From the sequence record PQ066597.1: a stretch of 64,000 nucleotides of DNA; one strand, given 5' to 3'. The notes under the pieces are model-generated. The model was not told the origin of the DNA, searched no databases, and saw only the letters and a program-made list of their open reading frames with translations. The position numbers and the translations under genes are program-made. Shown here in pieces: positions 5,125-38,462 of the stretch (position 1 is its first letter; each line of letters opens with the position of its first letter).

Positions 5125-5355
5125 TTAGCTCCTAGATTTAAATGTAAACATCACAGAAACATGTGGACTTCTATCGTGGGTTGGGAACATCGACCAACAT
5201 AATACATCATAACCTTTTGCCGATGCAATAGGGTATAGATCATTCAGTAAAGATTCTACCGAACTCTCGAATGCTCGATATTCGTATTTTTTCAGAGACT
5301 CAAACTCTCTTGACAATTGAACAAATGATTTTACAACAAATTTACCAGTCCACAT
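5125..5355 (-). CDS. hypothetical protein
   Basis: Tiled minus-strand ORF. Confidence 0.75.
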   Translation of the reverse strand: MWTGKFVVKSFVQLSREFESLKKYEYRAFESSVESLLNDLYPIASAKGYDVLCWSMFPTHDRSPHVSVMFTFKSRS

Positions 5356-5357
5356 AA

Positions 5358-5648
5358 TTAAACCCTCTCCAACATTGGAAGAATGAGAGTGTGTAACATA
5401 TCCATATAAGTCTGATAGTAGATGTCTTTATGGATCTCTTTTAGATATTCCATGGTGTCCCGCCCGTTGAAAGACCAGCTAACAACCGCAGCATTATCAA
5501 TCTCTCGCAACGGGTTTCCGTTGAAATTAACAATGATGAAATTCTCACTTCGTGGAACCTCGATGAGCCATTCGTTCTTCCCAGCCAATGATTTACCTTT
5601 TGAAACCACGACTTTTCGTACATCTTCATTGATAAATTGGATTTTCAT
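5358..5648 (-). CDS. hypothetical early protein
   Basis: First ORF after promoter 5673-5700; GAGG RBS. Confidence 0.8.
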   Translation of the reverse strand: MKIQFINEDVRKVVVSKGKSLAGKNEWLIEVPRSENFIIVNFNGNPLREIDNAAVVSWSFNGRDTMEYLKEIHKDIYYQTYMDMLHTLILPMLERV

Positions 5649-5672
5649 AAAACACCTCTCGTTTGAGAATTC

Positions 5673-5700
5673 ATAGTATCAGAAACAAAAATGGAGTCAA
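5673..5700 (-). promoter_or_regulatory. sigma70-like early promoter
   Basis: TTGACT-N16-TACTAT with TG extension. Confidence 0.65.
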
Positions 5701-5722
5701 GCGATTTCTCGCAAGACTCCAT
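5686..5722 (-). terminator. intrinsic terminator overlapping promoter -35
   Basis: ATGGAGTC/GACTCCAT stem (5691-5698, 5715-5722) followed by TTTTG on minus strand. Confidence 0.6.
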
Positions 5723-5726
5723 AAAA

Positions 5727-6059
5727 TTATTTCTTGAGCATACCAGTAAGTTTACTATGTGCTAGGTTAAAGCTTTGTTGTGTGTCGGACTGAGACCGTT
5801 TCCACGTAATCTTACCAAAATCCTCAATTGGGCTGATGTTAACCTTGGTAATATCTACGTTTTCTTTCACCCAACGCTTCCATTCGCCCATTTGGACTTC
5901 ATAGAAACGTTTAGCCTCGCGCATACCAGCAGTATTCATTTTTGCTTGAACACTGTTCAGAATAGAAATGTATTGATTTACAATCCGGTTATAATCTTTT
6001 GATGTTTTCATTTGAAACGATTCGTCGATTCGTTCGAAAAATTCTTTATTCTTTAACAT
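5727..6059 (-). CDS. hypothetical protein, possible internal head protein
   Basis: Start re-called at MLKNKEFFERIDES (AAGGA RBS); basic, downstream of a late-box-linked gene. Confidence 0.7.
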   Translation of the reverse strand: MLKNKEFFERIDESFQMKTSKDYNRIVNQYISILNSVQAKMNTAGMREAKRFYEVQMGEWKRWVKENVDITKVNISPIEDFGKITWKRSQSDTQQSFNLAHSKLTGMLKK

Positions 6060-6060
6060 T

Positions 6061-6936
6061 TTAGTAATCCTTCCCATACCCATAGTTTCTGGCGGCAATT
6101 GTATCATATAGATCCACATGGTGGAACTCTTTTAGTTCATCCATGGAACCATATGCGTATTTCCCGGAATCTAGACGAAGATCAATGGGAATATATTCAC
6201 CACCAATCCCAATTTTAGCCTTCTTTATATCACCGATCATCAAAGGGAAACCGGAATCATTGGAATCATCAAGAAAAATTGTACCAAACTGGGCAACCGA
6301 ACCAGTTGACCTATGAATTGGATCCTGCCAAATATCACGGCAGTATGGCTTGTGTTCATCTGGCATTTCGGAAATAGCCTTTTCTGTTACCTCGTCAAGG
6401 TCAAATACCTCAACACCGTCAATATCAGAACCGATTATATTCTTGGCTTCATTTAGCATAGTCTCGAACTCATCTTGGATCATAAGAGATTCGACGAGGG
6501 ATTCCATCATTGCGCTTTTTTGACCAGCAGCTTGTTGTTTATGAGAAATTTTACCACCGGTTCCTTTTGGGAACACAGTTACGATATTGATTTCACGACC
6601 TTTAACAGAACCAACTACGGAACGATTTTCAGATTGGGAATGGAACATATAAGTACCATTCTTAATCTTGTTTGCTTCTACGTGTTTTACCATCTTTCGA
6701 GCAAAATCTTTCCACTCTTCCGCCGTTTTAGCAGCGGCTCGCTGGTGTGCGCGAGCTTGAGCATGAACAGAACTTTGAACCTTAAACGCTCCCACCCGCA
6801 TAGAAACAGGTAGCTTTGATTGTTTGCTAAGTTCGAATTCCTGATCTTTAGTAAGTTCGACCTTTTGATTTCGGCTTTGTGCCATTTGTTCATCAAACCG
6901 GGTCAGGGTTGCGAACAAGTCTTTAGTTTTCAACAT
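6061..6936 (-). CDS. hypothetical protein with DUF4258/RelE-like (BECR) motifs; possible internal head protein
   Basis: Start re-called at MLKTKD (AAGGA RBS); SVHAQARAHQR ... INIVTVF motifs; acidic MES/LNE repeats. Confidence 0.65.
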   Translation of the reverse strand: MLKTKDLFATLTRFDEQMAQSRNQKVELTKDQEFELSKQSKLPVSMRVGAFKVQSSVHAQARAHQRAAAKTAEEWKDFARKMVKHVEANKIKNGTYMFHSQSENRSVVGSVKGREINIVTVFPKGTGGKISHKQQAAGQKSAMMESLVESLMIQDEFETMLNEAKNIIGSDIDGVEVFDLDEVTEKAISEMPDEHKPYCRDIWQDPIHRSTGSVAQFGTIFLDDSNDSGFPLMIGDIKKAKIGIGGEYIPIDLRLDSGKYAYGSMDELKEFHHVDLYDTIAARNYGYGKDY

Positions 6937-6964: not shown

Positions 6965-7102
6965 CTATTTAGGAAGTAGGAAAACCTCAACAAGAACCGC
7001 AATAATACTCACACCAACCACAATAACCTTATGTTTCTTTTTCTTCGATACCACAAAAGCAGTACCTAAACCAAACCCAGTTGCAAACAAAGCAAAAGTC
7101 AT
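6965..7102 (-). CDS. small membrane protein (45 aa)
   Basis: MTFALFATGFGLG...; C-terminal part of track ORF 6965-7405; GGGG RBS. Confidence 0.65.
   Translation of the reverse strand: MTFALFATGFGLGTAFVVSKKKKHKVIVVGVSIIAVLVEVFLLPK
6966..6973 (-). promoter_or_regulatory. candidate late promoter CCTAAATA
   Basis: TAAATA core 30 nt upstream of ATG 6936; same variant at 36711. Confidence 0.45.
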
Positions 7103-7113
7103 AATATTCCCCC

Positions 7114-7254
7114 TTATGACATAGCAAGGAGAGATATGGAAGAAAGACCGGCTACGATATAGCCAGTAGTGAAAGCGCGTTGATATGCTGCACGAGTAGC
7201 CTGTACCGATTTCACGAAACAAACGCCAGCAACAAAACCAAGGGCGATTACCAT
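7114..7254 (-). CDS. small membrane protein (46 aa)
   Basis: Start re-called at MVIALG after promoter 7287-7314; hydrophobic. Confidence 0.65.
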   Translation of the reverse strand: MVIALGFVAGVCFVKSVQATRAAYQRAFTTGYIVAGLSSISLLAMS

Positions 7255-7286
7255 CTCTTTCTTCCTTCTCGTTAGTTGATATGAGT

Positions 7287-7314
7287 AGTATACACGAGTT
7301 GGACTTGAGATCAA
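7287..7314 (-). promoter_or_regulatory. sigma70-like early promoter
   Basis: TTGATC-N16-TATACT; leader shared with promoter at 53788. Confidence 0.65.
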
Positions 7315-7320
7315 CTACTT

Positions 7321-7707
7321 TTAAAAAAGAATTTTCACGATAGTAAAAATTATTGCGTAATGAACAAGATGGTGTGCCATTTGGTCTAACCCGAGATGAT
7401 ACCAAAAGACCGGCTCTTGGGGCGTATGACCACGGCTTAACTCTACTTTAATCTTGTCAATAAAGAAGTGTGATATAAAATCAAAAAGGGTAAGACCTAG
7501 GACAACCCATATATTCAATCCCATAATGATCGCAACGAACATTGTCATTAATGCATGTACAGTACAATGTGCAGCCAGTGGTGTAACCCAACCAACCTCT
7601 TTAAATTTCCCAAGCATATACTTACCTTGTAGAAGGTAATCTGCTGAGTAATGCTTTATTTGGTAAAACACCAATAACCCAAAAATTGTGCTAATAGGTT
7701 CAATCAT
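7321..7707 (-). CDS. DUF3307-like membrane protein
   Basis: HYSADYLLQ, HxxxH, HFFID, GLDQMAHH motifs with hydrophobic helices. Confidence 0.8.
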   Translation of the reverse strand: MIEPISTIFGLLVFYQIKHYSADYLLQGKYMLGKFKEVGWVTPLAAHCTVHALMTMFVAIIMGLNIWVVLGLTLFDFISHFFIDKIKVELSRGHTPQEPVFWYHLGLDQMAHHLVHYAIIFTIVKILF

Positions 7708-8858
7708 TTTAAAAAGTCCTTACAAACAATGTGCTCGTCAAATACTTCTGGATACCCGAGAAGGTTCGCCAGACGTTGACGACAGGCTACCACGTTAGAT
7801 TCAACTATGTCAAACCCGAATATCTGGTTAGCGATAGTTTCCTTATCATGCCCCATATCTAACCGACGTTCTGCGATACGGTATAGGATATTCCCATCAC
7901 CACACGCCGGATCACAGAATGACCCATCCCAGTTAACAACACGGTCAAGTAACATATCAGTAACCACGTCTGGGGTAAACACCTCGTGTGTGGATTTCTG
8001 GCGCTCTAAATCAAACTCAGAAGCAACTCGATTCTTATCCTCTGTGTGCGTCCCTGAATGGTATCTACCTCGCGTTTCTACGTCATAGTAGGGTAACACA
8101 CCCATATAACCACAAATCCAATCACGAATCGTTGGGAGAGGTTTGGTGAGGTCTGGGTACGGTACTGATGCTAGGGTTCCAGAATCGAGGTGTTGATTAT
8201 TCTTATACAGTGCCAAGAACACCCTAGCATAATCAGATTTGATATAATCCAAGAACTTATTAGCTTCTTCTAAAGTATCAAATCCATAGTGGTGCCATTT
8301 AAGATTTGGTTTCGTTTCAACAGAATATTCTTTTGGAACCATAGTAAAGAAATCCGCGTTAAACCTTTCACCTGCTATTGGTACGTGTCCACGGATTAAT
8401 CCAATGTTAACGAAATAGTTTCCTTCTGGATTCTGGCTATTTAAAAGGTTCTTTTGAATTGGTAGCGCTTCATATAGCTTTAAGATCTGGGTTCCGAAAT
8501 AGTTTAGTTCATCAACCTTCATCCTATTTCTGCCATTAGTCATAGGCCCATATACATCGATATACCCATCAAATGGGATACCCATTATTGTATGGGTTAT
8601 GGATAATGGAACAAACAACCCAGCAGAAAAATAAAGGTTACCATCGATTAGTTCCATCGATGTTATGTTTTCTCCAACCACACTTTTAAATTCAACCACA
8701 CGTTTCTGTTCTTTTACCGGGCGACGATTGAAAAATGGTGCAGATGGATGCACACAAATTATCTCTCTCCCAATACAACTCGCTTTGTTAAAGAAGTCTA
8801 AGTGAAGATTCCTGTTATATGGTGGATTCATTATCACGTAATCATATGACTCATTCAT
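7704..8858 (-). CDS. DNA amino-methyltransferase (m6A/m4C), circularly permuted motif order
   Basis: NPPY at residues 11-14; EVFTP, FCDPACGDG, GFDI and DFL at the C-terminus. Confidence 0.8.
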   Translation of the reverse strand: MNESYDYVIMNPPYNRNLHLDFFNKASCIGREIICVHPSAPFFNRRPVKEQKRVVEFKSVVGENITSMELIDGNLYFSAGLFVPLSITHTIMGIPFDGYIDVYGPMTNGRNRMKVDELNYFGTQILKLYEALPIQKNLLNSQNPEGNYFVNIGLIRGHVPIAGERFNADFFTMVPKEYSVETKPNLKWHHYGFDTLEEANKFLDYIKSDYARVFLALYKNNQHLDSGTLASVPYPDLTKPLPTIRDWICGYMGVLPYYDVETRGRYHSGTHTEDKNRVASEFDLERQKSTHEVFTPDVVTDMLLDRVVNWDGSFCDPACGDGNILYRIAERRLDMGHDKETIANQIFGFDIVESNVVACRQRLANLLGYPEVFDEHIVCKDFLK

Positions 8859-9152: not shown

Positions 9153-9449
9153 TCATAGGCAAATAATATCTTGGTGGAAAATATCGTTTTCAACATCACG
9201 ATAAGAACGGACGTCACCAACATAATCTCGATAAAATTTAATTAGGTCTTCCAACTTACGGAAAGAACTATAAACCTCTTTTGTGAAGAACAAATTTCGT
9301 AGTGCATCATAATACACAGTATGGCTTTCCATCGCATGATATCGGTCTTCCATACCGAAATAATCTGGTTCATATACAACGGAAATAAAAGAGATCTTAC
9401 CGATTTGAATGTTTTCCAACAGTTTAAATTCGTCAAATTTAATATTCAT
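9153..9449 (-). CDS. hypothetical protein
   Basis: Tiled minus-strand ORF. Confidence 0.75.
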   Translation of the reverse strand: MNIKFDEFKLLENIQIGKISFISVVYEPDYFGMEDRYHAMESHTVYYDALRNLFFTKEVYSSFRKLEDLIKFYRDYVGDVRSYRDVENDIFHQDIICL

Positions 9450-9909
9450 ATTGATTCTCCGTAAGGATTGTAATTACTCGATCTTGGTTTCTTACTACTC
9501 GTAAAGAATCTGGTGGATTCTTTACAAATTCTCGGATTCGGATTTGTGCATTTACATCTAGGATACCAACCCGTCCCATATACCAGACAGTATACATGTC
9601 TCTATCTGCTGGTGTGAATTCTGGATATTCTTTAATGATATCTGAGTCTTTAACTTTGATATTTTCCACTCGTTGGAAATACCTTACAATAAAATGGTCT
9701 GTTAGATTTAATACCCCGACAGTTCTCCATGTACTGTAATTATAATGATCTTCTATCCTACCACCTAGATAATCACCGGGCTGTAATGTGTATTCTACCT
9801 CTTCTAAAATACGATGACAGTTTGCTATCTGATCGTTCATTAGTTGGATTTGGCGATTAATCTTGGTCACTCTAGAGGGTTTAATTCCACGAATACGACG
9901 ACCGTTCAT
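9439..9909 (-). CDS. hypothetical protein with T-x-H-x3-R-x3-R ... VITI motif (DUF4258-like)
   Basis: LTDHFIVRYFQR and RVITIL. Confidence 0.6.
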   Translation of the reverse strand: MNGRRIRGIKPSRVTKINRQIQLMNDQIANCHRILEEVEYTLQPGDYLGGRIEDHYNYSTWRTVGVLNLTDHFIVRYFQRVENIKVKDSDIIKEYPEFTPADRDMYTVWYMGRVGILDVNAQIRIREFVKNPPDSLRVVRNQDRVITILTENQYEY

Positions 9910-9911
9910 AA

Positions 9912-10373
9912 TTAAACCCCCGGATATTCAATACGATTCTCGTTTATCTCGTTCCAATAATCGTCGTTCTCGTTACTACATTCATCGTCGTCCCAGTCTC
10001 GACGGGTCCAACCAAGATTTTCCGAATTCCAGAATGCAATACACCAATCACCAATACCCTCATACCCATCATCGGCACCATACCCATATCGGATTTTTTG
10101 AACCCAATAATAACCGGATTTCCTATCCTTCACTCGGAGTTTATCCAATTCCTTATTCTTGGTTTCTGCCATTTCTTGTGCAAAATTAATGACTACCGGA
10201 ATAAGTTCTGGTTGGATAATAGACCTACCCCACCCAGACCAGATAATAATCTTACCGTCTTTATTGGGCCATGAGAATTCTTTAATGAATTTGTAATCAC
10301 TCATAACAACAGACAATTCCCAATTGTTACTCTTGCGATCACCCAATTCTTTCACAATCCATTTTGCATTCAT
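9912..10373 (-). CDS. hypothetical protein
   Basis: Start re-called at MNAKW (GAGG RBS). Confidence 0.75.
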   Translation of the reverse strand: MNAKWIVKELGDRKSNNWELSVVMSDYKFIKEFSWPNKDGKIIIWSGWGRSIIQPELIPVVINFAQEMAETKNKELDKLRVKDRKSGYYWVQKIRYGYGADDGYEGIGDWCIAFWNSENLGWTRRDWDDDECSNENDDYWNEINENRIEYPGV

Positions 10374-10408
10374 AATATATCCTCTCAATTTTTAGATATT
10401 ATTGCTTA

Positions 10409-11035
10409 TTATTTCTCTTGTGTCAACTTGTTCATTTCGATGCAATATTCAACAAAAGATTTTATATCTGGGTTTTTATCCATTGGGTTTAGGTTTACTT
10501 CCTGTTGTTCTTCTACTTTAACTGAATGTGTCTTAAGTAAATCCCAAACAAGGTCAACGTACCTTGTACGGACACAAACACGTATACTATTGAATTTAAT
10601 GATAATGAATGTTCTATTAGAAGAACCATCCCCCCGTGGGAGGTCGTAGTAAGATATGTCGGAACGATTATCATTCATCCCAATTGCTGCATAAGAAAGC
10701 CTACCATATTGATCATCAATAAGTGATACATCCCCATGTTTTTTAAGATTTTTGATAAAAGAACGTACTTGTCCTTTACTAGACAGATAAACCGAATTTC
10801 GGAGTATTGATAATGCGATATAAGATCTATGTGTATTAAGCCACAACTCCGGATCGTAATTATGAAACCACATTGTATCTGATAATGCTTTTGCAACGTG
10901 AAGGTGGTCTTCACATGTTGCATTTTTTGCAATCATACGAGCATTCCTATTTACATATCGTGGTGGTTTATTAATAGTCTCCTTTGTTGTGATGTTCAAA
11001 TCTTCTATATCGTGTTGGGAATACATCTTGACCAT
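10409..11035 (-). CDS. hypothetical protein, paralog of 11037-11690
   Basis: Shared LSxxAxGMND, RT[RK], [DE]IxSFxxYCI motifs. Confidence 0.85.
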   Translation of the reverse strand: MVKMYSQHDIEDLNITTKETINKPPRYVNRNARMIAKNATCEDHLHVAKALSDTMWFHNYDPELWLNTHRSYIALSILRNSVYLSSKGQVRSFIKNLKKHGDVSLIDDQYGRLSYAAIGMNDNRSDISYYDLPRGDGSSNRTFIIIKFNSIRVCVRTRYVDLVWDLLKTHSVKVEEQQEVNLNPMDKNPDIKSFVEYCIEMNKLTQEK

Positions 11036-28309: not shown

Positions 28310-28338
28310 ATATTACAAAAGTTGGGACGTGAAATCAA
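28310..28338 (-). promoter_or_regulatory. sigma70-like early promoter
   Basis: TTGATT-N17-TAATAT. Confidence 0.65.
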
Positions 28339-29315
28339 CCAATTTTTGAAAATAAATCCAGTACAGCAGATGTTTTTGCTTTCGCTTCAACTTCTAGACA
28401 ACCCAAACCAGACAGGATTTTAGCTTGTTGGATGACCATAGGATCATCAATATAATCGCTATGTGCGCGGGATACTTTGTCTACTTCACGGCTTTGTGAA
28501 ACGTGGAAAAACGGTTTTTGGTTTCTCCAAGTGGAAAGGATTCGTTCAAACGTAGATGAATCAACATCCAAAAATTCACCGGTCATAACAAGATGGTGAT
28601 GACAGTCATACAACATTTTTATACCATATTTTTCACAAATAAGCAACGTATTTTGAGTGTCCCCCGTGAAGATCTTACCGTTTTTATCGCTATTCTCAAA
28701 TGAGAGCCAAGGAATAAGATCCGAATATTGACCATTATCAAGTTCTGGGAGATGATCTAAGTTGCCTTCAAGATGAATATTAATACAAGATTTATCTGAT
28801 GTAGTCAACCGTTCCATAAAATATTTGTGATACATGAGGGTAGCAAAAGATTGATTTCTGGTATCTTCACCGACAGAATTGATGATAACAAACTGGTCCG
28901 GGTGAGTAGATATCACGATACCGTTTGAATCTATTACTTTTTTGCAACGATTTAGCAACATGTCCACAGCGGATAACATATCCACATCGTAAAGAGACCC
29001 TAACACTGGGTGGTCAAACAACGGAAGTAGATCTGAACTAATCCGCAGAGCATGACATTCAGTTGGCATACCAGACACAAAAACCAGTTGGTTGTACAAA
29101 GCATTTAGATTTTGTTTAACTTTAGGCATCAGCTTTGCCTTTAGTTTAATAGAATTTTTAGATACCACATCCAATGTAAGGAGTGACGGGTCGTCAATCC
29201 CACATATCTGCATCATACTTTTTCTGGTAACCGTACCCATTTTTGTATCTTTATGAGCGGTAAAAGTTGATTTAGACTTATCGAAAATACCAGTCATACA
29301 TACAGTACCAAGCAT
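28335..29315 (-). CDS. uvsE: UV damage endonuclease (UvsE/UvdE family)
   Basis: LRISS, STHPDQF, FENSDK, YDCHHH, FHVS, AHSDYI, EVEAKAK motifs. Confidence 0.9.
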   Translation of the reverse strand: MLGTVCMTGIFDKSKSTFTAHKDTKMGTVTRKSMMQICGIDDPSLLTLDVVSKNSIKLKAKLMPKVKQNLNALYNQLVFVSGMPTECHALRISSDLLPLFDHPVLGSLYDVDMLSAVDMLLNRCKKVIDSNGIVISTHPDQFVIINSVGEDTRNQSFATLMYHKYFMERLTTSDKSCINIHLEGNLDHLPELDNGQYSDLIPWLSFENSDKNGKIFTGDTQNTLLICEKYGIKMLYDCHHHLVMTGEFLDVDSSTFERILSTWRNQKPFFHVSQSREVDKVSRAHSDYIDDPMVIQQAKILSGLGCLEVEAKAKTSAVLDLFSKIG

Positions 29316-29346: not shown

Positions 29347-29376
29347 ATAATAACAAAAAGGGCTGACCCAAGTCAA
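29347..29376 (-). promoter_or_regulatory. sigma70-like early promoter overlapping a terminator
   Basis: TTGACT-N18-TATTAT with TG; AAAAAGGG/CCCTTTTT stem 29355-29384. Confidence 0.65.
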
Positions 29377-29388
29377 CCCTTTTTTCAT

Positions 29389-29735: not shown

Positions 29736-31262
29736 TTACAGACCAGCCAGCGCACGAGCTTGGATGTCTTTCCAGATTTGGAAGTTAACAATCTTACCGT
29801 CACGGAAAGCAAGTTTCAATTCGCCTTGGTTGAACTCATCAGCGGTTTGGTTCTCGAAAAGAACATAATCACCATCAACCTTCTCAACCCGCAGACGACC
29901 CCGAGCGGACTTCTTACTGTTCAACGCAGTTTTCGGGTTCTTCTGCATGGAGATATCAATTCCATCAACGATGGAGTGAGTACCCTTGATTGCAATAGAG
30001 AAGCTATCGCGAGAAGCATTCTTGAGGAAACCCCAACTACCAGTACCCATCAGTACGTTGGAAACACACCAGCCAGCAGCAGCCATACCAGCATAGATCT
30101 TTTCTTGCAGTTCACCGTCAATCGCTTCACCGTAGATGATACCAACTTTCGGATTCAGAACACGGAAACCCTTCTCGTTCACAGTACCACCAAAAATATC
30201 CCACAGGATTTGCAGAGACCCTTTACGTTCGTTCTCATCTTCTGCTTCCGGGTCACCCATGATCACCTCGTAAGGAGTCTTGGGGGAACTGTCTGGGCGA
30301 ACTACAAACTTACACAGACCGTTTGAATCCGGTTGACGGGCTTCGATTTCGTCTTTCAGTGCCAGAAGGTCAACCGACAGCAGACGATAATAATCTTCAC
30401 TATCCGCAACGTAACTCAGGATCCCGGTCGGATAAGTTTCTGTGAAAAGACGGCGGAGGCTTTCACGTTCTGCATGTTCAAAACCAAGACCACGGAAGTA
30501 AGCGATACGTTGGGTTGCGGTAGCATGTTCGAAGGCGTTAACAGAACAACCAATCAGTTCCTCGTCGCTATTAGCACCGTAATAGTCTTCGATGTAATCG
30601 ATAGCCCAACCGGTGTCAGTACCAGCACTGAACAGAAGTTGACCCATACCAGAGATGGTAGCATCCTCAATACCACGATGACCCCGAGCGGCGAAACAGT
30701 GGTTAGCAATCAGAGTCCAGAAGTCGTCTGCACCAGTCATCGGAGCCCACTTATTGGAGGTCTTGCGGTATTGAGCAGATACCATAGCGGAGTTGCTCAT
30801 AGGCCATACCATCGCACTCAGGAAGGTTTCGAGGTAGTTAACCAACCAGAAGAACTCTTTCTTGGTGTTACTCACTACGAAAGCAGGGATACCCATGTTA
30901 ATCCAGTTACCCTCTTCGATTGCTCGCACTTCAATAGGCAGATAACCAAGGTCATGAAGGTCACCAATAGCCTTAATCATGGAATCGCCATGGTCTTTAC
31001 CGATGGAGTTCTTGACACGACGAGAGAACCGCTTGACTACTTTCTCTTTAGACTTACTAAAGAAGTTCTGATCCCATTGCTCCACCATGTATTGCAGGGT
31101 GTATTGCAGACCGAAGAATACCATCTTACCGTTGCCGTGAATGGTGTTAGCCAGACGGTCAGAACGAGGGGTTAGGTTGGAGATTACAAGTTCAGTACCG
31201 TTGATGTATTGATCGATGTGACCCCATTTGTAGAAGTCTACGGACATATGCGGATATTTCAT
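29736..31262 (-). CDS. nadV: nicotinamide phosphoribosyltransferase-family protein (NAMPT / Namat-like)
   Basis: DFYKxGH, FFGLQY, FAARG, GTDT, EHA, VVRPDS, GIIYGEAI, KNPKT...KKSARG motifs. Confidence 0.93.
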   Translation of the reverse strand: MKYPHMSVDFYKWGHIDQYINGTELVISNLTPRSDRLANTIHGNGKMVFFGLQYTLQYMVEQWDQNFFSKSKEKVVKRFSRRVKNSIGKDHGDSMIKAIGDLHDLGYLPIEVRAIEEGNWINMGIPAFVVSNTKKEFFWLVNYLETFLSAMVWPMSNSAMVSAQYRKTSNKWAPMTGADDFWTLIANHCFAARGHRGIEDATISGMGQLLFSAGTDTGWAIDYIEDYYGANSDEELIGCSVNAFEHATATQRIAYFRGLGFEHAERESLRRLFTETYPTGILSYVADSEDYYRLLSVDLLALKDEIEARQPDSNGLCKFVVRPDSSPKTPYEVIMGDPEAEDENERKGSLQILWDIFGGTVNEKGFRVLNPKVGIIYGEAIDGELQEKIYAGMAAAGWCVSNVLMGTGSWGFLKNASRDSFSIAIKGTHSIVDGIDISMQKNPKTALNSKKSARGRLRVEKVDGDYVLFENQTADEFNQGELKLAFRDGKIVNFQIWKDIQARALAGL

Positions 31263-31278: not shown

Positions 31279-31821
31279 TTACATAATTTGGGTAAAGTAT
31301 TTTTCTAACGTATCTTTTCTCATAGAATACGTTGTTTCTGTTTTAACGTCAACAAAATTTACAGAACCATCATCACAAATTTTACAAACCTGCCCATCCA
31401 TCACAAAATTATCAATCGCAGTAAGCCAACCGATGTTTCGATGGTCTCTCATAAATTCGACCCGATGTCTATCTGATTTGTAGTATATCGAGGTCACGTT
31501 AGGTTTAAAAGTAAATTTTTTGCGGTATTCATTGATGATTTTTGGGGTATCTTCAAATCCTACCATTCTGGTGAATTTACTAACAGGTTCCTCTTCAAAC
31601 TGTTGAATATACTCTACCACACTATCGAAGGAAAACAAAACTATTTTTTCGGACGAATAGCGATTTTTTATTAAAACAAAAATATCATCTTTATAGTCAA
31701 CCACATAGTTACTTGACATGGTAAACCGATCCAGCCGACAACGGAGTTCCGCATAATCAGAAACATCCCCGTCGGCGTTTTCTACAACATAAGGAATATT
31801 GTCAATAAAATAAATTCTCAT
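31279..31821 (-). CDS. hypothetical protein
   Basis: Tiled minus-strand ORF. Confidence 0.8.
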   Translation of the reverse strand: MRIYFIDNIPYVVENADGDVSDYAELRCRLDRFTMSSNYVVDYKDDIFVLIKNRYSSEKIVLFSFDSVVEYIQQFEEEPVSKFTRMVGFEDTPKIINEYRKKFTFKPNVTSIYYKSDRHRVEFMRDHRNIGWLTAIDNFVMDGQVCKICDDGSVNFVDVKTETTYSMRKDTLEKYFTQIM

Positions 31822-32009
31822 AACACCAACCTTGTTCTTTGAACAACCAGATCACCACCTTCCTTAAACTCTAAGTTTACAAGAATGCAATCACCTTCAT
31901 CTTTGTAAGAATGTACCACCAAATCGGATAGATTATATCCAATATTTTCGAGCGTAATGTCGATTATTTTTGTCATAACCCGTCCGGGGGTTTGCCATTT
32001 ATTCATCAA
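31818..32009 (-). CDS. hypothetical protein
   Basis: Tiled ORF, ATGA overlaps. Confidence 0.75.
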   Translation of the reverse strand: MMNKWQTPGRVMTKIIDITLENIGYNLSDLVVHSYKDEGDCILVNLEFKEGGDLVVQRTRLVL

Positions 32010-32443
32010 AATTTGTTCCCCTCATAGTCAATACGAAGAGATTCACTTTTTCCGAACTTTCGTTCGCCGCAAATAAACCCAGCCCGTTTAGCTCGACAAC
32101 TACCGAGGCTACTACCAAGCCGCCGTTTATGAATGATACGTCCAATAAATTCATCCATATGATCATGGTTTACCAGCTTAGAGAAAACTACGGTCAAAAC
32201 TTTACCATCTTTAAGATCATACTCGATGAATTTATAATCACCGATTGTATCACGACCAGTATCAATGATCTCGATATCATTTTCTTCCGAACGGAACCAG
32301 TCATGATATCGGTCAAACATCCGGATTTGGTGTACCTTTTTCACTTCGTCCATTGGAATTTCACCAATGATCTTGATAGTGATAGGTTGATATGATTCGT
32401 GACAGTCTTCTTTCTTCAATACATATGTAATTGAATTAATCAT
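32006..32443 (-). CDS. hypothetical protein
   Basis: Tiled ORF, ATGA overlaps. Confidence 0.8.
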   Translation of the reverse strand: MINSITYVLKKEDCHESYQPITIKIIGEIPMDEVKKVHQIRMFDRYHDWFRSEENDIEIIDTGRDTIGDYKFIEYDLKDGKVLTVVFSKLVNHDHMDEFIGRIIHKRRLGSSLGSCRAKRAGFICGERKFGKSESLRIDYEGNKF

Positions 32444-32619
32444 TTCTTTTCTCCAAAACAGAGAGTACCGATAGCCAGATTATGAACAAGATTCTTGATC
32501 CCTTCTTCGTTCATCCCATTCGCCTTTTCTCGCATCAACATTTCCTGAACAGATTGGTTAGCCAGAAGTTCATCGATACGGGAGTTAATGATTTGGGTCA
32601 TAGTTTCGATACTCATCAT
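32440..32619 (-). CDS. hypothetical protein
   Basis: Start re-called at MMSIET (AAGGA RBS). Confidence 0.7.
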   Translation of the reverse strand: MMSIETMTQIINSRIDELLANQSVQEMLMREKANGMNEEGIKNLVHNLAIGTLCFGEKK

Positions 32620-32629
32620 GTTTAGTTCC

Positions 32630-33427
32630 TTATTTTGTCCAGTCGAAACGAGTATATACGTTGTCGATGTACTGTGCAAGGTTTTCTTTGGCGTTGTAAG
32701 AAAAAATTCCATGGGTAACAAACAGGTCCACTCGAACCGCACCAGACTCTTTCAATACTTTACCAAGATTTAGGAAAGAACGACCACCATCACAAATATC
32801 GTCTACGATCAACAACCGCTTACCTTTGACGTCAGCATTGAAACGAGGTTCGCTAACTTCACCAGTGTTGATGTCACGAGTCTTCATGGCTTCAATTACA
32901 GGTAGTCCCGCACTTTGAGCTTGAGGATAAATCTTTTTCAGAGCACCTGCATCCGGGGATACGATTGCGTCATAATTATGACGGGAAATCCCTTGAGAAC
33001 CCCAACACCACTGTTTGTTAACAGATACGTTATTGATCAATGCGGTTGCTACATCGGAATGTGGGTCTGTGAGACAAACCAAATCATATTTCATAGAGTT
33101 GATGAAATCACAAAAGACACGCAAAGACAGGCTTTCACCTTCTGTCATAACTCGGTCTTGTCGAGCATAAGGGAGATAGGAAAGGTCCAAAACGTATCGC
33201 ACACCAGTCCCGAAGAATCGGTGAAGTGCATCCGTAAGGATCGCCAGTTTCATGATATCGCCATCGTGGATACTTGCATCAACACGAACAGTTTCTGTCT
33301 CATAAGACCCATATTCAATAACATCTTTTGGAAGTTTGACGTTCCATTCCCCACCGGCAAACTGTTTAAAATCAACAATTGCATTACTGATATTGAAGTC
33401 TTTATAAGTAACAAACAATTTATACAT
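32630..33427 (-). CDS. prs: ribose-phosphate pyrophosphokinase-family protein (Prs / Adps-like)
   Basis: FAGGE, YLPYARQDR, DPHS, VSPDAGA, KTRD, IVDDICDGGRSF, VTHGIFS motifs. Confidence 0.93.
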   Translation of the reverse strand: MYKLFVTYKDFNISNAIVDFKQFAGGEWNVKLPKDVIEYGSYETETVRVDASIHDGDIMKLAILTDALHRFFGTGVRYVLDLSYLPYARQDRVMTEGESLSLRVFCDFINSMKYDLVCLTDPHSDVATALINNVSVNKQWCWGSQGISRHNYDAIVSPDAGALKKIYPQAQSAGLPVIEAMKTRDINTGEVSEPRFNADVKGKRLLIVDDICDGGRSFLNLGKVLKESGAVRVDLFVTHGIFSYNAKENLAQYIDNVYTRFDWTK

Positions 33428-33825
33428 TAGATAATCCTCATTGAAATTATATCAGAGTTTAGGACGAGGTATTCCCCTTCCTGTTTCAAGATCCTAAGTA
33501 GAATCTTTTTATATGGTTCATAATCACAGAACTTGTGGATCATGAACCTGATGTTATCGATTGAAAGGACTGGAACTGCTTCTACTTCGTATGTGTGTCC
33601 ATCGTTTGTCTTCTGGAAGTATGATCCAACAGACCGAGCCGTTTTAGCACAAGAAGAAAAGCTATTCATCGTGTGGTCATCGTGTGGATTCTTAGACGAC
33701 CACCTATACAAAATACACGGTTTATTATTAAATTTTTCTTTTGCATAGTCAACAAGAATTTTAACTTCTTCGTCAGATACGGGGAGTCCGTCAAGATAAC
33801 GGAACAAAACAGAATGTGGGGTCAA
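33427..33825 (-). CDS. putative R-S-E class ADP-ribosyltransferase-like protein
   Basis: ILYR41, S55-F-S57, Q-E116-G-E118-YLVL spacing; TTG start coupled to NADAR stop. Confidence 0.55.
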   Translation of the reverse strand: MTPHSVLFRYLDGLPVSDEEVKILVDYAKEKFNNKPCILYRWSSKNPHDDHTMNSFSSCAKTARSVGSYFQKTNDGHTYEVEAVPVLSIDNIRFMIHKFCDYEPYKKILLRILKQEGEYLVLNSDIISMRII

Positions 33826-34271
33826 AGTTGTTCTCTAATCTCGTTCAAAATGTCACAAAACTCTTTTTCTGTCAGAATTGTGAGGTGTGGATCCTTACAA
33901 CCCATAGTATGGGTCAATACATGCGGTTTTGAGTGCACCAGAGCCTCTAGGAATGATTTGTTCTGTTCTGCCATTGAAAGGTATGCGTTATACAAAAGAT
34001 TGCTATACGCTTCACTGAGGCGGTTTACAGGCTTTCCTTTATACCACATGGTAAGGTCTTTCTGCCACCCCCTATTAGAATGACAAACCTTATAAACTTC
34101 ATGACCTCTCAGAGTGTTTATGTCTGGGGGATTTTCATATTTGAGGCTTTGTAAGAAAGCCTCAATCGTCCGATAAAACACACCATCGAATGTAAATGGG
34201 TGTTCTGTGAAGTTTGACAACTCACGTTCAATCCAATCCCGGCTCCCAGAATAGATGTCAATGATTGCCAT
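33822..34271 (-). CDS. NADAR-family protein (T4 gp30.3-like)
   Basis: LSNF..HPFTFDG...TIEAFLQSLK, T.LTE motifs. Confidence 0.85.
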   Translation of the reverse strand: MAIIDIYSGSRDWIERELSNFTEHPFTFDGVFYRTIEAFLQSLKYENPPDINTLRGHEVYKVCHSNRGWQKDLTMWYKGKPVNRLSEAYSNLLYNAYLSMAEQNKSFLEALVHSKPHVLTHTMGCKDPHLTILTEKEFCDILNEIREQL

Positions 34272-36215: not shown

Positions 36216-36247
36216 TTAGATTCTCCAAAAAATAAAACGGTATAAGG

Positions 36248-36276
36248 ATTATCTCCCTATACCGTGAACATGTCAA
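36248..36276 (-). promoter_or_regulatory. sigma70-like early promoter inside terminator hairpin
   Basis: TTGACA-N17-GATAAT; ACGGTATA/TATACCGT stem 36237-36265 with U-tract. Confidence 0.65.
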
Positions 36277-37280: not shown

Positions 37281-37507
37281 TACGAAACCCTCTTTAAAAA
37301 TGGTTTGGTGTCTACAAGTTCTTCCGGTAGATATAGGTTTAACTTTGTTTCCATACCACTACCACCGCACATAGAACCAAGAACAATCATCAATAGTTCT
37401 TTCATGTCACCAATTGATTCAACTTTGTCCATATCAACTACAACATGAACTGGTCTCTTAAAAACCATATCGTTTACCCTAAAGCTACCACTTTTATCCA
37501 CGTTCAA
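37280..37507 (-). CDS. hypothetical protein
   Basis: Tiled ORF, TAATG coupling. Confidence 0.75.
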   Translation of the reverse strand: MNVDKSGSFRVNDMVFKRPVHVVVDMDKVESIGDMKELLMIVLGSMCGGSGMETKLNLYLPEELVDTKPFLKRVS

Positions 37508-38462
37508 TTACCTCGTTTACATAATATTCATAAATGAAATTGTTCCAATAATCGTGGTCTACTTCATCGGGCATACCGTTTTTGGATGCGATTACCGCCG
37601 CTGCCTCCGCTCGGTCCATAACATCCTCAAGGTACGGTTGAACTTCCTTTGAAAAATCCAACTTACCTTGTTTTACAAGCTTGATGTATTCCGCATTTTT
37701 CAAGGGGAATTGAAGATCACCAGTTGTGTAAATTTCAAGAAGTTGTTCCGCACCACGAATTGCGTGACTCATCGCCTTCCAATCGATACCAGACGAAGCC
37801 TTTTCAGCCCGAGCCCCATATTCAGATTTGATCTTCATAATCTGTTCTACAAACTCAGAGTAACGGATCCCAAACAGATATTTGCGACCAAGTACCTCGT
37901 AATAATAGACGGTCTGATGGCTGGGGTCTACAAACTTACCAATAATCAAGTTTTCACTCTGGGGCATACCAGATACAAGACCACCCAATCGGTCATCCCC
38001 ATACAAGCTTACAGGACGATTCTCGATGAAAGACAACACAGAATTAAGCTCTTGGAGACGAGACCCTTTAACCCCATACTTACTTGCCTGTTTACGAACA
38101 TAACCAAGATAAGCTTTCATCTTGGTTGTGTAAAAATCAGACCGGTTGTTTCGCAAATGTTGGAAGATCTCGGAGTTTGTCATCACTTTATCGATAGGTG
38201 CGTGAAGCATATCAATAGCCGCAGTTTCCCCCTTAGAAGCCATTTGAATGAACTTTTTCAGAGAAAAATACTCTCGGTCGATGTCGTCCGCCGTGTTCGC
38301 AGACCCTTTAGCTCCGGTATCCCTGTGATAAACCTCTTTTGTTCCCATGATGATCTGTCGTGGTTCTGGGAGGAATACACCCTTATAATCAGTATCACTT
38401 TCTGGGGTGTCTGTTCCATACAACTTAGATCCAAACACACACTCAAAAATCAATTCACTCAT
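37494..38462 (-). CDS. RlaP-like nucleotidyltransferase (T4 nrdC.11-like)
   Basis: FGSKLYGTDTPESDTDYKGVF (GS-x10-DxD), DWKAMSHAIR motifs. Confidence 0.85.
   Translation of the reverse strand: MSELIFECVFGSKLYGTDTPESDTDYKGVFLPEPRQIIMGTKEVYHRDTGAKGSANTADDIDREYFSLKKFIQMASKGETAAIDMLHAPIDKVMTNSEIFQHLRNNRSDFYTTKMKAYLGYVRKQASKYGVKGSRLQELNSVLSFIENRPVSLYGDDRLGGLVSGMPQSENLIIGKFVDPSHQTVYYYEVLGRKYLFGIRYSEFVEQIMKIKSEYGARAEKASSGIDWKAMSHAIRGAEQLLEIYTTGDLQFPLKNAEYIKLVKQGKLDFSKEVQPYLEDVMDRAEAAAVIASKNGMPDEVDHDYWNNFIYEYYVNEVIERG

Follow-up and report, generated by a model that had tools for sequence, protein, structure and literature searches.

The sequence considered here is a stretch of 64,000 nucleotides (nt) from record PQ066597.1, referred to below as the window, which is 100% identical, with unchanged coordinates, to the T4-like Aeromonas phage vB_AdhaM_G2. 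The close relatives of this phage are P19, AP1, AS-zj, CC2 and others, and phage 65, 65.2 and avDM6 are more distant (Straboviridae, Ishigurovirus). The gene in question is an open reading frame (ORF) of 132 amino acids (33427–33825; vBAdhaMG2_0084) that starts with TTG and is a candidate for a minimal, Mod-like ADP-ribosyltransferase (ART) with the R-S-E motif order. It lies between the gene for a NADAR protein of the gp30.3/AdfN type (33822–34271; 149 amino acids) and the gene for a Prs-like protein (32630–33427; 265 amino acids). The gene for Namat, a nicotinamide ADP-ribose transferase of 508 amino acids (29736–31262), follows outside the segment 32630–34271, with the Prs-like gene 1.4 kilobases (kb) upstream of it and four small ORFs between the two. 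All four genes are encoded on the minus strand, as are nearly all of the small genes in this window, which represents a T4-like early region.

At the first junction, the TTG of the ORF (33825–33823) and the TGA of the NADAR gene (33824–33822) form the string TTGA, a 4-nt overlap, and at the second, the ATG of the Prs-like gene (33427–33425) has one base in common with the TAA of the ORF (TAATG). An earlier note on this DNA had pointed to these coordinates and overlaps and to R41, S55-F-S57 and E116-G-E118 in the ORF product, all of which are present in the sequence. It had also proposed that a writer of ADP-ribose marks (the ORF product), an eraser (the NADAR) and the recyclers of nicotinamide adenine dinucleotide (NAD+) form one phage system, a claim that fares less well, as discussed below.

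The NADAR and NARP1 genes

The NADAR protein matches the Pfam family PF08010 (Phage_30_3) over profile positions 2–138 of 138, with an E-value of 2.5e-33 and 115 bits against a cut-off of 36, as well as phrog_652 (E 1e-42) and, weakly, the YbiA-type NADAR model TIGR02464 (E 0.007). With gp30.3 of T4 it has 37% identity end to end (residues 1–149; E 5e-28). T4 gp30.3 is AdfN, a NADAR that strips DarT1-type ADP-ribose off phage DNA, is both necessary and sufficient against DarTG1 and is most effective on phage-type modified DNA; its guanine-ADP-ribose hydrolase activity has been demonstrated in vitro. The AdfN of RB69 is inactivated by loss of its last 15 residues, and the C-terminus of the window protein is present and aligned to the end of T4 gp30.3, including the residues that correspond to this loss. 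A histidine is also conserved with T4 gp30.3 (VLTHT versus VLKHS) and may correspond to the phage-type histidine of the last strand. The product of 33822–34271 is thus probably a guanine-ADP-ribose glycohydrolase serving in anti-DarT1 counter-defence, and the naming of this gene as a NADAR in the earlier note is borne out by the PF08010 match and the identity with AdfN.

NARP1 is an anti-NADase pathway composed of Adps and Namat that rebuilds NAD+ from ADP-ribose and nicotinamide. It has been defined by the clustering of Prs-like and Namat genes, which are adjacent in the type examples, and the hallmarks of the Adps donor site are a remodelled PP loop and an equivalent of the catalytic Lys185 (PMC13586617). 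The Prs-like protein of the window carries the Pfam domains Pribosyl_synth, Pribosyltran_N and Pribosyltran and matches phrog_619 (E 3.6e-86) and TIGR01251 (118 bits). Its best solved relatives are Prs proteins (E 3e-18), with no Adps chain among the PDB matches. Since it is clustered with a Namat, it is most likely an Adps, and 32630–33427 probably encodes the Adps of NARP1. The Namat itself matches phrog_448 (E 1e-169) and resembles the SpbetaL1 Namat (PDB 9W5X/9W5W; E 3e-96) far more closely than human NAMPT (1e-38), so that its sequence identifies 29736–31262 as a Namat and not an ordinary Nampt, in agreement with what had been proposed for it.

The 132-residue protein as a candidate ADP-ribosyltransferase

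The ORF is a real gene, as judged from the ratio of nonsynonymous to synonymous substitution (dN/dS) of about 0.1 among its orthologues, which indicates purifying selection, and the conservation of residues 1–18 supports the TTG start. This is the sole TTG start among 32 neighbouring genes, it is accompanied by a weak ribosome-binding site, and it is kept inside TTGA in seven out of seven lineage members, though ATG could arise there by a silent substitution in the final codon of the NADAR gene. The product matches phrog_18982 (E 3.6e-68), a tiny family of unknown function, and it is carried by 19 phage records, all from one Aeromonas phage lineage. A word-indexed search of 5.8 billion proteins found four clusters, and a HMMER profile scan over 1.84 billion representatives contributed two more proteins, remote relatives with 33% identity, P0006 (197 amino acids) and P0007 (147 amino acids), each of which matches phrog_18982 independently. 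Searches seeded with these two returned no further relatives beyond themselves, and scans of the IMG/VR and JGI metagenomes for relatives gave known phages or fragments only.

Two other candidates were rejected as relatives. The metagenome candidate L010 is spurious or cut, and P0008 was set aside as a repeat protein and a possible chance match. P0008 (177 amino acids) repeats a unit of about 57 amino acids, reading ...FHRWPTSSPMPFDRELNSESNT..., three times in tandem, and it weakly matches residues 22–68 of the ORF product (E 5e-4), which span the Y-R-W and N-S-F-S stretches.

The case for an ART starts with three short motifs, all read from the minus strand. R41 (codon AGG, 33703–33705), within L-Y-R-W, is the proposed NAD+-binding arginine of strand 1; S55-F-S57 (33655–33663) is the proposed S-x-S motif of strand 2; and E116-G-E118 (33472–33480), followed by Y-L-V-L, is the proposed catalytic E-x-E. 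In an alignment of seven family members, in which identity falls to 33% and which includes P0006 and P0007, 23 of the 132 columns (17%) are invariant, and Y40-R41, S55, S57, E116 and E118 are among them. In the two remote relatives, the S-F-S position reads S-T-S (V-S-T-S and I-S-T-S) and E-x-E reads E-Q-E and E-K-E. As R41, S55, S57, E116 and E118 had been called from a single sequence before they were found invariant at 33% identity, the motif assignment has passed a prospective test. A loose version of the pattern (R, S-x-[ST], [EQ]-x-E followed by a hydrophobic residue) turns up in 8 of 5000 shuffled versions of the ORF. Of the 119 minus-strand ORFs of at least 80 amino acids in the window, only one other has it, the 508-residue Namat. 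The R-S-E motif of the ORF exceeds chance.

An AlphaFold2 model computed from the seven sequences, with a predicted local distance difference test (pLDDT) value of 67 and a predicted template modelling (pTM) score of 0.64, places R41 and S55–57 on consecutive strands. It has two N-terminal helices, a strand at residues 37–43 that bears R41, S55–57 on the next strand (54–57), two helices ahead of E-x-E and a strand after it. When the model is compared with BFVD by Foldseek, the matches have probabilities of 0.5–1.0 and template modelling (TM) scores of 0.52–0.58. Small phage proteins among them reach probabilities of 0.89–1.0, the top matches are uncharacterised, and a 167-residue protein of ModA size, annotated as 'ADP-ribosylase', appears with a TM score of 0.56. 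The comparison with PDB gave no significant match; ExoS came third and ART2.2 tenth in its list. Another structural match in BFVD, gp675 of Bacillus phage G, carries GYR, SFS and EEE, and it was rejected as a sequence homologue of the ORF for want of sequence-profile similarity. A six-strand ART core of such small size has a precedent in YarT, which has 114 amino acids. The ORF product probably has an ART fold, and the chances that it is an active transferase appear evenly balanced.

The closest proven ARTs appear to be ModA and ModB of T4, members of the Mod-like ART family defined by Iyer et al. (PMC9503650). Against a reference profile of seven ModA/ModB members, built from phage records, hhalign pairs ORF residues 21–121 with ModB 53–176 and brings all three motifs, R, S-x-S and E-x-E, into register, at a score of 23.2 (P 0.006). 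In 300 column shuffles the score is 12.5 ± 2.3 and at most 20.1, so that none reaches 23.2, which lies about 4.6 standard deviations above their mean. In this alignment, R41 falls on R73 of ModB, and E116/E118 fall on E163-Q-E165 of ModA and E171-Q-E173 of ModB. Local strings are held in common as well, namely LYRWSSK in the ORF and LYRGISK in ModA/B, and the ModA/B family shows V-x-S-F-[ST] and, five residues on, A-R-x-F, where the ORF has SFS, five residues and ARS (SFS-x5-ARS). A search of the first 114 kb of the vB_AdhaM_G2 genome, which is half of it, yielded no canonical ModA/B, and so the ORF could fill that role.

Linkage of the genes and competing explanations

The proposal of one writer-eraser-recycler system depends on how closely the genes travel together. 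Among phage records, gp30.3-type NADARs number 1511 and Adps homologues 1470, as against 19 for the ORF. Neither P0007 (10 kb on each side) nor P0006 (its whole 4.5-kb contig) has a NADAR or Prs-like neighbour. In Acj9, AhP_Mru1 and phiR1-37, the vicinity of Adps holds no NADAR that can be detected, and what precedes Adps there is unrelated: in AhP_Mru1 it is a MazG-like gene, in the other two phages tiny ORFs. The overlaps are real, as had been noted, but do not stand out in their surroundings: start and stop codons overlap at 12 of the 31 junctions nearby (26.5–40.8 kb), spacing is 10 nt or less at 22 of them, and T4 30.3 overlaps its own neighbour, 30.2, by an identical 4 nt; T4 30.2 was considered as a homologue of the ORF and is unrelated. 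Overlap is generic in this region and was rejected as evidence for a functional unit. An idea of independent linkage to NADAR, which arose from a structural match in Sinorhizobium phage phiN3, was likewise dropped, as no ART-sized gene adjoins the NADAR of phiM19. Since AdfN (anti-DarT1) and NARP1 (anti-NADase) have established functions, neither calls for a phage ART. On this evidence from sequence records, a single circuit of writer, eraser and recyclers is not supported, and of the neighbourhood conservation that had been anticipated, the part within the lineage stands and the part concerning the remote relatives does not.

The records of phage 65 (about 6990–7900) and phage 65.2 (2520–3430) bear on the same question. 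They differ at three positions over 900 nt, including reciprocal 1-nt indels: in phage 65, a surplus G immediately behind the codon for R41 shifts the frame of the ORF and the NADAR is intact, while in phage 65.2, an extra T in a T-run shifts the frame of the NADAR, which is unannotated, and the ORF is intact. If these indels are real, neither gene needs the other. The Namat of phage 65 (3286–4816; ST65p363, ST65p364) is also split, into two coding sequences of 1392 and 126 nt as compared with a single one of 1530 nt in phage 65.2, which makes sequencing errors a plausible cause of the indels.

The explanation preferred here, tentatively and at somewhat less than an even chance, is that the ORF encodes a minimal and highly divergent ART of the R-S-E type (cholera-toxin-like, ARTC), nearest to the ModA/ModB group, and that its neighbours are separate counter-defence modules. 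The protein would consist of two N-terminal helices and a small six-strand core, in which NAD+ would be bound by Y40-R41 (strand 1) together with S55-x-S57 (strand 2), and E116-x-E118, placed before strand 5, would catalyse the transfer. It may be made early and at a low level, by way of a weak TTG start coupled to NADAR termination, and would spend NAD+ to ADP-ribosylate a host macromolecule during takeover; given the E-x-E motif, the target is likelier to be a protein arginine than a base. Separately, the NADAR would remove DarT1-type guanine ADP-ribose from phage DNA, and Adps and Namat would, as NARP1, restore NAD+ from ADP-ribose and nicotinamide after an attack by host NADases. NADAR, ORF and NARP1 may belong to one early transcription unit and deal in one currency, NAD+ and ADP-ribose, as is common in T4-like phages; mutual dependence is not part of the proposal.

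Several observations weigh against this explanation. By sequence, the ORF has no match in Pfam, NCBIfam, PADLOC or PDB, and its profile finds only Protein A tags in PDB, although the missing Pfam match is uninformative, given that T4 ModA and ModB, which are proven ARTs, have no Pfam match either. Scores of hidden Markov models against sequences, for the ORF and ModA/B, are at noise level, and Foldseek gives no match in PDB with an E-value of 0.001 or below. In the hhalign comparison, the HH probability is 6%, the reversed template scores 19.5, and the ORF ranks first of the 119 window ORFs only narrowly, with others at 22.5–22.6. The spacing from R to S-x-S is 14 residues in the ORF and 26 in ModB, and 14 residues follow E-x-E as compared with about 35 in ModA/B, whose last strands are absent. 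Within the model, residues 65–74 and 123–132 are below pLDDT 50, and a first model, computed from a shallower alignment of five sequences, had a different, poor fold (pLDDT 51) and was discarded. As to the neighbours, their independence of the ORF is an argument from distribution, and the trio, both overlaps and the TTG are strictly conserved in the lineage, down to 60% identity and also in two relatives from metagenomes, whereas the spacer between Adps and Namat is variable. The earlier reading of 33427–33825 as ART-like, for which fold and profile comparisons had been suggested, is consequently upheld in part: the invariant R-S-E residues, the weak, in-register similarity to the ModA/B profile and a fold model near an annotated ADP-ribosylase speak for it, and the lack of significant similarity to any ART, by sequence or by PDB structure, speaks against it.

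Much of this evidence can also be accommodated if the ORF has nothing to do with ADP-ribosylation and encodes a lineage-specific, small early protein with an unrelated alpha/beta fold, in which R, S-x-S and E-x-E are coincidental or serve other chemistry. The lack of any significant ART match by sequence, profile-to-sequence or PDB structure search would then be natural, as would hhalign scores for the reversed template and other window ORFs that approach the 23.2 of the ORF, a model of moderate confidence, top BFVD matches that are uncharacterised and an atypical motif spacing. This account is possible but on the whole doubtful, as all five predicted residues are invariant at an identity at which 17% of columns are, the middle motif drifts to the canonical S-T-S, the three motifs are collinear with those of ModA/B and ART-annotated proteins recur in two structural libraries. 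A different alternative keeps the ART-like fold and gives up the transfer, so that the product would bind NAD+ or ADP-ribose, inhibit a host ART or NADase (e.g., DarT) or act as a decoy for it, or hand ADP-ribose to Adps as a partner. The domain is shorter than that of ModA/B, and with 132 residues, 14 of them after E-x-E, parts for substrate recognition may be missing; small non-enzymatic anti-DarT proteins, AdfA and AdfB, exist, and the ORF sits between two enzymes that handle ADP-ribose. Strict conservation of the arginine and of both glutamates is what catalysis demands rather than binding alone, and this alternative is considered decidedly unlikely.

A writer-eraser pair resembling a toxin-antitoxin system would assign the ORF product a different target: it would mark guanine in host or competitor DNA or RNA, an excess of NADAR would clear phage DNA, and the freed ADP-ribose and nicotinamide could enter NARP1. 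A NADAR gene followed by a small ART gene is also the arrangement of YbiA-YarT, a proven pair, and ARTC enzymes such as ScARP write the mark that NADARs erase. The conserved lone TTG and weak ribosome-binding site fit a product made in smaller amounts than its partner upstream, the trio and its overlaps persist to 60% identity next to a variable spacer, the preference of T4 AdfN for phage-type modified DNA might allow self to be distinguished from non-self, and RyDEP shows that an enzyme producing ADP-ribose can feed NARP1. The linkage is nonetheless confined to a single lineage, NADAR being found in 1511 phage records without the ORF and no NADAR lying within 10 kb of the remote relatives, and the record of phage 65.2, which is viable, has an intact ORF beside a frameshifted NADAR, a sequencing error being possible. 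E-x-E, moreover, usually accompanies arginine-specific protein ARTs such as ModA/B, and guanine-specific ARTC enzymes use Q-x-E. Finally, by estimate rather than computation, the ADP-ribose from DNA adducts is tiny in comparison with the cellular NAD+ pool, which would make the recycling quantitatively negligible. Such a pair is judged unlikely. That the ORF product ADP-ribosylates a Prs-type enzyme, either host Prs or phage Adps, and thereby redirects nucleotide or NAD+ metabolism, is very improbable. ParT toxins do act on Prs by ADP-ribosylation, and the TAATG coupling to the Prs-like gene is conserved in the lineage, but ParT toxins carry a RES domain with the motif order R-E-S, which differs from the R-S-E of the ORF, the remote relatives have no Prs neighbour and unrelated genes stand upstream of Adps in other phages (AhP_Mru1, Acj9, phiR1-37).

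Surroundings of the locus and comparison with known systems

The four genes lie in a block of about 6.9 kb (genes 0077–0089) that is bracketed by terminator-like hairpins on the minus strand, both recognised by consensus match. The hairpin 5' of the cluster (36237–36265) overlaps the best sigma-70-like match of the region (36276–36248), TTGACA-17-GATAAT, and since the counts of promoter-like sites in the region are not above those of shuffles, no promoter is claimed. The hairpin 3' of Namat and gene 0077 (29355–29384), a 13-pair stem followed by a T-rich tail, may be the end of a transcription unit. On one flank of the cluster lies a gene for a UvdE-type UV-damage endonuclease (28335–29315; PF03851, E 4e-31), and on the other a nucleotidyltransferase gene (37494–38462), whose homologues in the relatives L033 and L034 carry PF10127 (RlaP). 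The spacer between Adps and Namat (31279–32619) is a hot spot of variation, holding four small minus-strand ORFs in the window (59, 145, 62 and 180 amino acids; annotated as of unknown function, as are all their PHROG matches) and nine in L033. It contains a reverse-strand endonuclease gene in avDM6 (5304–6275) and in L034 (7020–8003; CapR/DUF723), and in Yersinia phage phiR1-37 (4786–5439) an HNH endonuclease lies between Adps and Namat. In the stretch 9365–10444 of a 133-kb phage contig, the remote relative P0007 directly follows a gene for a Metallophos_2 phosphoesterase (phrog_547) and closes a block of small genes on the same strand; the contig also has Phage_TreK and T7 0.6-like genes, and the phosphoesterase could hint at ADP-ribose or phosphate chemistry.

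If the ORF product is an active transferase, phrog_18982 would rank with the smallest ADP-ribosyltransferases of the R-S-E type described so far and would provide a Mod-like host-modifying enzyme to a lineage with no detectable ModA/ModB in the half of the genome that was searched. In the improbable event that a lytic phage here owns a NADAR-ART pair, in which a new minimal R-S-E ART marks the guanines of hosts or rivals and NARP1 restores the NAD+ spent, the phage would be turning DarT1/NADAR chemistry to offence and linking it with the reconstitution of NAD+. If the ORF is not an ART, it is an ordinary orphan gene that happens to separate two known modules of counter-defence. In either case, it is a cheap and well-defined place to ask whether phage NADARs are solely orphan antitoxins against host DarT1 or also partners of phage ARTs, and it could show whether the NAD+ and ADP-ribose genes that cluster in T4-like early regions cooperate.

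The combination had been put forward as undescribed, which applies to part of it. NADAR genes beside ARTs, and beside NAD+ salvage genes, have been reported in T4-like phages (Iyer et al., PMC9503650), a NADAR followed by a 114-residue ART toxin forms the proven YbiA-YarT toxin-antitoxin pair (PMC11125620), and RyDEP is an accessory enzyme within a NARP1 locus that produces ADP-ribose and feeds the pathway (10.64898/2026.05.28.727677). With these publications the concept is not new; this ORF and its position appear to be new to the literature searched.

Among the known systems, YbiA-YarT and DarT1-NADAR (DarTG1) resemble the locus in that a NADAR gene stands directly beside a small ART gene and the mark erased is guanine ADP-ribose, which ARTC-class enzymes such as ScARP also write, at N2 of guanine. 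In YbiA-YarT, the NADAR is upstream, and gene order and ART size are similar to those found here, where the genes are co-oriented with a 4-nt overlap. YarT and DarT1 are, however, H-Y-E enzymes (ARTD/HYD1), whereas the ORF is R-S-E; they come from bacterial pairs and not from a lytic phage, and the window NADAR is of the gp30.3 type, which usually has no ART partner. With respect to T4 AdfN, the window NADAR is a full-length homologue with an intact C-terminus, and the difference lies in the surroundings, as in T4 the stop of 30.3 is overlapped by 30.2, which is unrelated, and no ART lies closer than Alt, 3 kb downstream. In T4 (123500–130500), 30.3 is co-directional with alt, with 30.2, 30.1, the DNA ligase gene 30 and alt.1 in between; Alt is an ART packaged in the capsid, and a NADAR and an ART are thus near neighbours in T4 as well.

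NARP1 with accessory feeders such as RyDEP resembles the locus in having Prs-like and Namat genes in one cluster, and it sets a precedent for an extra gene that supplies ADP-ribose inside a NARP1 locus. Here, in contrast, Adps and Namat are split by four ORFs of unknown function, and a NADAR and an ART-like ORF take the place of a RyR-domain glycosidase as additional genes. T4 ModA and ModB, in turn, are early genes of a T4-like phage, as is the ORF, and the proteins have in common N-terminal helices, L-[YW]-R, [V]-x-S-F-[ST] followed by A-R, and E-x-E with a hydrophobic strand. They differ in length, with 200–207 amino acids as compared with 132, the ORF having 12 fewer residues from R to S-x-S and about 20 fewer after E-x-E, and the ORF differs further in its genomic position, its TTG start and its lack of significant homology to ModA/ModB at the sequence level.

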